DNA of 63,876 nucleotides, counting the filler, from Octopus bimaculoides (taxonomy: Eukaryota), in NCBI RefSeq assembly GCF_001194135.2. It is 4 parts of 4 records of this genome, joined end to end, with 100 filler letters (N's around TTAATTAATTAA, not from the genome) between each part and the next. Parts side by side here need not be neighbours in the genome. Positions count along the whole stretch, not along the records: positions 1 to 20,169 come from NC_068994.1; 3 more parts are not named here. One strand, written 5' to 3'. Within the stretch, counting starts at the first letter, position 1. Each line of letters begins with the position of its first letter. Below, piece after piece: positions 5,691-5,726 of this stretch. The notes beneath the pieces are model-generated. The model saw only the letters and a program-made list of their open reading frames with translations, was not told the origin of the DNA and did not search any database. Made by a program: the position numbers and the translations under genes.

Positions 5691-5726
5691 CTGTATTTCA
5701 GGTCAACCCCATCGTAATCAAGTTGT
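5691..5726 (-). CDS. Myt1: Probable 36-nt phase2/phase2 microexon of Myt1 adding QLDYDGVDLKYR before the last finger
   Basis: About 30-nt polypyrimidine tract ending ttcttcaag with no other AG for about 57 nt upstream; donor CAG|gtgagt; no stop in the frame demanded by both flanking exons. The AAG acceptor is atypical. Confidence 0.7.

Follow-up and report, generated by a model that had tools for sequence, protein, structure and literature searches.

Is a 36-nt open stretch in a long, repeat-rich intron of an octopus Myt1-like gene a genuine cassette microexon, and what would its inclusion do to the encoded protein? The question bears on neural gene regulation, as Myt1-family factors act to safeguard neuronal identity, and haploinsufficiency for MYT1L leads to a human neurodevelopmental disorder. 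We analyzed the whole 63,876-nt stretch of Octopus bimaculoides DNA that carries the locus (here called the window), together with related sequences from other bilaterians. We conclude that the stretch is very probably a genuine cassette microexon of a Myt1/Myt1L-like gene, that it originated in the cephalopod lineage, and that its peptide is under purifying selection.

The Myt1/Myt1L-like gene and its exons in the window

The gene lies on the minus strand, and four coding exons of this Myt1/Myt1L-like gene, which encodes a CCHHC zinc finger transcription factor, are found in the window. The features used below are the following.

10509..10694, minus strand: exon A, penultimate CCHHC finger, second half (SASGCPLANK...), and a variable low-complexity linker ending in ...RPVKMDAIV
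5727..5786, minus strand: 3′ splice region of the microexon, where a T-rich tract of pyrimidines that contains UCUU repeats precedes the AAG acceptor
5691..5726, minus strand: 36-nt microexon, phase 2 to phase 2, encoding (V)QLDYDGVDLKY(R) (from the sequence, tblastn, and XP_014787899.1)
5685..5690, minus strand: 5′ splice site of the microexon, GTGAGT, matching the consensus at 9/9 positions together with the exon end CAG
2411..2571, minus strand: exon C, last CCHHC finger, ending in ...QAGH, with the strong acceptor ttctttctttttcag
389..780, minus strand: exon D, terminal coding exon, with the C-terminal coiled-coil region DLENAEDMIEIENEIEDLKK...ISYLRKI and the stop codon

The edges of the two exons that flank the microexon were corrected to 10694..10509 (exon A) and 2571..2411 (exon C). 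The first half of the penultimate finger was sought in the window and is absent from it; it lies beyond position 20169 or in a gap of N's. Such gaps are located at 1054-1988, 3117-3261, 4466-5131, 5602-5611, 7018-7661, 9279-9438, and 16414-16862.

Both isoforms match the Pfam domain zf-C2HC (PF01530) with 53 bits, at a score cutoff of 32.3 and with the finger pattern CPxPGCxGxGHxxGxxxxHRSxSGCP, which places the protein in the Myt1/NZF family (MYT1, MYT1L, ST18). Relatives in the PDB are 2mf8, 2cs8, 2jyd, 2jx1, and 1pxe, and the cuttlefish orthologue has four zf-C2HC fingers. The C-terminal coiled coil is supported by full-length alignment to Myt1-family proteins of molluscs, annelids, insects, and vertebrates, the best-covered matches having E values of ∼1e-81 to 1e-50, and an AlphaFold2 model contains a long, confident helix at residues 90 to 161 that corresponds to this region.

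Several repeats surround the exons. An (ATT/ATC)n microsatellite begins right after the donor of exon A (minus strand, 10400-10508), and an (ACT/CTA)n microsatellite lies ∼110 nt upstream of the microexon (minus strand, 5838-5935). The 10-N gap interrupts a (TA)n/(TG)n microsatellite ∼80 nt past the microexon donor, which leaves the real sequence and length of the intron downstream of the microexon uncertain. The linker encoded by exon A contains Asn-rich (NNNNNSNN, AAC repeats) and Gly/Ser/Val-rich stretches (10530-10560 and 10600-10650) that are absent in cuttlefish; a coding microsatellite expansion is found immediately beside the invariant microexon.

Splice signals and reading frame of the microexon

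On the minus strand, the site reads ...ctttacttttttttctttcttcaag/ACAACTTGATTACGATGGGGTTGACCTGAAATACAG/gtgagttt (slashes mark exon boundaries), the exon being the 36 nt from 5726 to 5691. The pyrimidine fraction upstream of the AAG acceptor is 0.95 at positions −23 to −4. AG dinucleotides occur only at −61 and −2, leaving an AG-free zone of ∼58 nt, and branch-like YTNAY sites are present at −37, −31, and −24 (TTAAT, TTTAT, and TTTAC). The donor of exon A is weak (TGT/GTATGA, 4/9), whereas that of the microexon is CAG/GTGAGT. Exon A ends with ...AAG ATG GAT GCT ATT GT/ at 10509, and the last-finger exon starts with /G TGT CCA ACT CCA GGC TGT at 2571. Since the microexon has 36 nt and is symmetric, both splice products are in frame: inclusion yields KMDAIV-QLDYDGVDLKYR-CPTPGC and skipping yields KMDAIV-CPTPGC. 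The stretch therefore has what a cassette exon needs: its splice sites are canonical (AG and GT), its length is a multiple of 3, and the frame is kept both ways.

These observations bear out, in every detail, the sequence features given in the preliminary description of this DNA, which had listed a strong polypyrimidine tract with an AG-free zone, an AAG acceptor, a consensus GTGAGT donor, and 36 nt open in the phase-2 frame fitting both neighbors; the last point was confirmed from the ends of exons A and C. It had also likened the DLK of the microexon to the (E/D)LK that often precedes CPTPGC in this family. The likeness holds loosely and the register does not: in other fingers, (E/D/x)LK or LT directly abuts the first Cys (LKCPTPGC and LTCPTPGC in PDB entry 2mf8), whereas DLK is two residues further off in the octopus protein (DLKYR-C). 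Mollusc fingers have EQKCPTPGC and PLRCPIPGC at this place. The microexon Arg at −1 aligns to position 1 of the zf-C2HC profile, which is matched over 1-29 with the microexon versus 2-29 without it, and the score barely changes (53.3 versus 53.1 bits).

A more specific version of our proposal would make this a neural microexon of the ancestral Srrm234/eMIC program, included in neurons and left out in other cells, which we regard as doubtful. The gene is an orthologue of a neuron-specific transcription factor family, and the microexon is short, symmetric, strongly conserved, and located in a disordered linker beside a folded domain, all of which would suit such a program. With regard to length, eMIC/SRRM4-type microexons have 3 to 27 nt in the strict sense and up to 51 nt in the broad sense; at 36 nt, the octopus exon exceeds the first limit and stays below the second. 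Furthermore, Myt1-family genes are largely neural, so that a switch between neural and nonneural tissue would have little to act on. Exons of the eMIC class are characterized by a UGC close to the 3′ splice site, which is their hallmark, by UCUC alternation, and by an AG exclusion zone and a pyrimidine tract that are both long, as listed for flies and mammals (PMC8797185). The octopus microexon has the AG exclusion zone and the pyrimidine tract but lacks the hallmark, as no TGC was found in the 150 nt upstream of its acceptor, in agreement with the earlier claim that no UGC lies next to it, and it also lacks UCUC alternation.

Rbfox-type regulation was also considered, as one TGCATG is located ∼195 nt downstream of the microexon (5496..5491, minus strand). 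This hexamer occurs 33 times in the window versus 20.5 times expected; a single downstream copy is therefore unremarkable and was rejected as evidence for Rbfox.

Both isoforms in the databases and the included form in cuttlefish transcripts

The microexon and both of its isoforms have been in RefSeq for years. XP_014787899.1 (P0001), myelin transcription factor 1-like protein isoform X1 of O. bimaculoides, is 100% identical to our conceptual spliced protein and contains ...VKMDAIVQLDYDGVDLKYRCPTPGC..., i.e., the microexon residues, and the skipped protein exactly matches isoform X2, XP_014787900.1. Isoform X1 thus corresponds to exon A, the microexon, and exons C and D, and X2 differs from it only by the lack of the 12 residues. 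The UniProt gene model A0A0L8FQ49 (P0126) is also of the skipped form. It follows that the existence of the microexon is not a discovery, and the word "hidden" applied to it by the preliminary description is right for an ORF track and wrong with respect to RefSeq, which lists the very proteins that had been predicted for inclusion and skipping. Our literature search found no paper that describes the microexon, and a 2026 preprint with a tissue-splicing data set that includes O. bimaculoides does not mention Myt1. What we add is a chance estimate, evidence from cuttlefish transcripts, a selection signal, and the restriction to one lineage.

RefSeq X1 and X2 begin at an internal Met (MMGNNNNN...) in exon A, although exon A has its own acceptor and starts in the middle of a finger. 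The cuttlefish ORF extends without a stop beyond its first Met, into a poly-Q run on the upstream side, and Myt1-family proteins of other molluscs have ∼1,000 to 1,200 aa. Both RefSeq entries are fragments that lack the N-terminal portion of a much longer protein.

The included form is expressed in another cephalopod order. Two proteins from public sequencing-run assemblies, P0127 (399 aa) and P0133 (378 aa), which belong to the same 90% cluster, both contain QLDYDGVDLKYR. The public assembly collection indexes P0127 in 31 blocks; 24 contigs were read from it and 10 were fetched, and all 24 RNA-seq contigs (∼1.9 to 2.6 kb each) carry the included form with the identical 12 residues. SRR23936171 and SRR25097170 are whole-hatchling RNA-seq runs of the cuttlefish Sepia esculenta (PMC10571815), and two more runs, SRR19578113 and SRR20545815, are named by other papers on S. 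esculenta. The contigs share ∼80% nucleotide identity with the octopus exons, and they connect exons separated by kilobases of octopus genomic DNA, which shows that they represent spliced mRNA. A tblastn search with the cuttlefish P0127 matched 5725..5690 with 12/12 identity. The symmetric, in-frame 36-nt cassette that had been proposed before the last Myt1 finger thus corresponds to RefSeq X1/X2, and its included form is present in cuttlefish mRNA. The cuttlefish contigs already contradict an absence of the inclusion junctions 10509>5726 and 5691>2571.

These transcripts raise the possibility that the microexon is effectively constitutive in cephalopods and that the skipped isoform is a rare splicing error or an artifact of gene prediction. 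Skipping was seen in predicted models only (RefSeq X2 and UniProt A0A0L8FQ49), and the UniProt model could simply have missed a 36-nt exon. Every cuttlefish contig read includes the microexon, and an exact look-up of the full-length skipped ORFs of P0127 and P0133 found neither among ∼15 billion proteins. As the included form occurs in many runs, the microexon may be near-constitutive in cuttlefish, and the 9/9 donor and the 95% pyrimidine tract are indeed strong signals. However, because an assembler retains the major path, no complete ORF would be expected from a minority skipped form, and its absence is weak evidence. In addition, RefSeq holds the skipped form as a separate isoform, X2, which the NCBI pipeline normally creates only with transcript support, and the AAG acceptor, the long AG-free zone, and the length of 36 nt are typical of regulated exons. 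On balance, we consider a constitutive exon unlikely and retain the cassette as the more probable reading.

One cuttlefish contig (L011, encoding P0133, from one run) lacks exactly 21 residues relative to contig L001 (L011 615-625), joining ...DDEPL/SASGCP.... The missing residues correspond to a 63-nt exon that encodes the first half of this protein's penultimate finger. Nucella, another mollusc, many insects, and ticks share the gap (EPLSASGCP or EPLRASGCP). From these alignments, loss of the 63-nt exon looks like a widely conserved skip that would destroy a finger in protostome Myt1 genes.

Chance expectation and constraint on the peptide

We then evaluated how often an equivalent stretch would arise by chance. 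The intron before the last-CCHHC-finger exon (10508..2572) has 7,937 nt, including 1,625 N's, and contains 208 AG..GT candidates of 6 to 60 nt, all of them symmetric and with the required frame open; an open frame is therefore uninformative by itself. Only one of the 208, the microexon, combines a pyrimidine tract of at least 0.8 with a donor of at least 8/9. No intron among 2,000 simulated with a first-order Markov model had a tract of at least 0.9 together with a 9/9 donor, and the relaxed thresholds were met on average 0.0045 times per simulated intron.

The octopus and cuttlefish microexons differ at 6 of 36 nt, and all six differences are at third codon positions and synonymous. For six random changes, the probability that none would alter the peptide is 3.5e-5, rising to 9e-4 when the changes are restricted to transitions. 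In contrast, the adjacent linker has diverged to 57% identity with insertions and deletions (octopus VPVAGGGSLGGSVSVGGGDQ...MMGNNNNNSNNRPV versus cuttlefish SGAGGDQ...MIMAGRPI). Taken together, the synonymous differences and the diverged linker indicate that the 12 residues are under purifying selection across the octopus-cuttlefish split, and hence across coleoid cephalopods as judged from the two species compared. This split dates back ∼250 million years or more.

A chance pseudo-exon, i.e., a fortuitous AG and GT around an open 36-nt stretch of a long, repeat-rich intron, might be suspected from the 208 open candidates and from the microsatellites that fill the intron and create pyrimidine runs, but it can practically be dismissed, because the microexon is the sole candidate with two strong sites and was equaled in 0/2,000 simulations, is present in RefSeq, and occurs in mRNA of another cephalopod order, where its peptide is unchanged and all its nucleotide changes are synonymous, which refutes this explanation.

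Origin in the cephalopod lineage

Outside cephalopods, the junction is uninterrupted. In bivalves, gastropods, an annelid, arthropods (insects and ticks), hemichordates, amphioxus, and vertebrates, K-x-[DE]-G-x-x abuts CPTPGC with no insert, as illustrated by SLKMDGIV/CPTPGC in Mytilus, SLKMDGVV/ in Pecten, IKMDGLT/ in Ptychodera, and the human-type VKTEGMS/. Since every non-cephalopod bilaterian examined is devoid of the insert, the skipped form represents the ancestral junction, and the sequence comparison indicates that an old phase-2 intron acquired the microexon within the cephalopod lineage.

The cephalopod sample for the microexon consists of two species. Three protein homologue searches returned no squid, Nautilus, or other octopus orthologue that covers the microexon region, and the origin is consequently placed no finer than the cephalopod lineage. 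These searches returned proteins of ∼0.55 to 1.75 times the query length, e.g., 143 to 451 aa for a query of 258 aa. A 118-aa query gave matches of 71 to 204 aa only and thus missed the identical 215-aa P0001, and a third query, padded to 1,000 residues to reach full-length proteins, still gave no cephalopod match. Genomic fragments with the last-finger exon only (P0105, P0111, P0141, P0145, P0148, and others) were set aside, as they are not cephalopod-like downstream of the finger.

Proposed splicing and consequences of inclusion

We propose that the weak donor of exon A (10509) would be joined to the AAG acceptor at 5726 and that the GTGAGT donor at 5691 would then be joined to the last-finger exon at 2571. 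The 12 added residues lie at the end of a flexible linker, immediately N-terminal to the last finger's first cysteine, its first zinc ligand. Skipping would join 10509 to 2571 and restore the K-M-D-x-I-V/CPTPGC junction of all other bilaterians examined. Inclusion may well be regulated, as suggested by the pyrimidine/UCUU tract, the AG-free zone, the strong donor, the AAG, the 36-nt length, and the weak exon A donor upstream. The insert would lengthen the tether between the last two fingers and replace the residues at −1 to −12, with an Arg for a Val at −1, which could change the presentation of the last finger to DNA or to a partner. As the sequence stands, inclusion may thus alter finger spacing or DNA-contact residues.

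We also looked at the predicted structure of isoform X1. In the AlphaFold2 model, built with a 42-sequence alignment, pLDDT is below 50 for residues 1 to 32, which include the microexon, and no fold is predicted for the insert. The peptide thus probably sits in a disordered linker, and the model gives no structural support for a specific contact role. Given this predicted disorder, a role in spacing or tethering, or as a short motif, appears more likely than the creation of a new folded element.

A bolder reading is that the microexon is a coleoid innovation, unchanged for about a quarter of a billion years and controlled by tissue or stage outside the UGC/eMIC system, that retunes how the last finger of the only Myt1-family factor in cephalopods binds DNA or a partner. 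We find this distinctly unlikely in its full form. If true, it would represent a lineage-specific change in a core regulator of neuronal identity. More generally, an insert that is cephalopod-only and does not vary between octopus and cuttlefish may plausibly account for a small part of the divergence of cephalopod neural gene regulation, and the microexon is a natural variant for probing the residues just upstream of a CCHHC finger.

Comparison with known systems

Alternative segments occur elsewhere in the linker and finger region of Myt1 proteins. Two amphioxus Myt1-like isoforms (P0256 and P0263) differ in a 17-residue segment, ECKDVPGYWRSPVQSSS, located in the same inter-finger linker at another position, and some sequences from molluscs, insects, and ticks lack the 21-residue exon that encodes the penultimate finger in its first half. 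Like the microexon, both events affect this region; unlike it, neither puts residues between K-M-D-G-x-x and CPTPGC.

The SRRM4/SRRM3/Srrm234 neural microexons of vertebrates and flies resemble the octopus exon in being short, symmetric, in-frame cassettes of neural genes, with a conserved peptide in a disordered region beside a folded domain and with a long AG-free zone and pyrimidine tract. The octopus exon differs from them by its length (36 nt versus at most 27 nt) and by the lack of a UGC near the 3′ splice site. Its donor is strong, unlike that of fly eMIC exons, and its origin is cephalopod-specific, whereas the eMIC program is ancestral.

A second parallel is WT1 +/−KTS, where splicing also inserts a few residues between the DNA-binding fingers of a developmental transcription factor, in that case with a proven effect on DNA binding. 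The WT1 insert arises from an alternative donor and adds 3 residues to a short, canonical C2H2 linker, whereas the octopus insert, known from sequence alone, arises from a cassette exon and adds 12 residues to a poorly conserved CCHHC linker of ∼30 to 50 residues.
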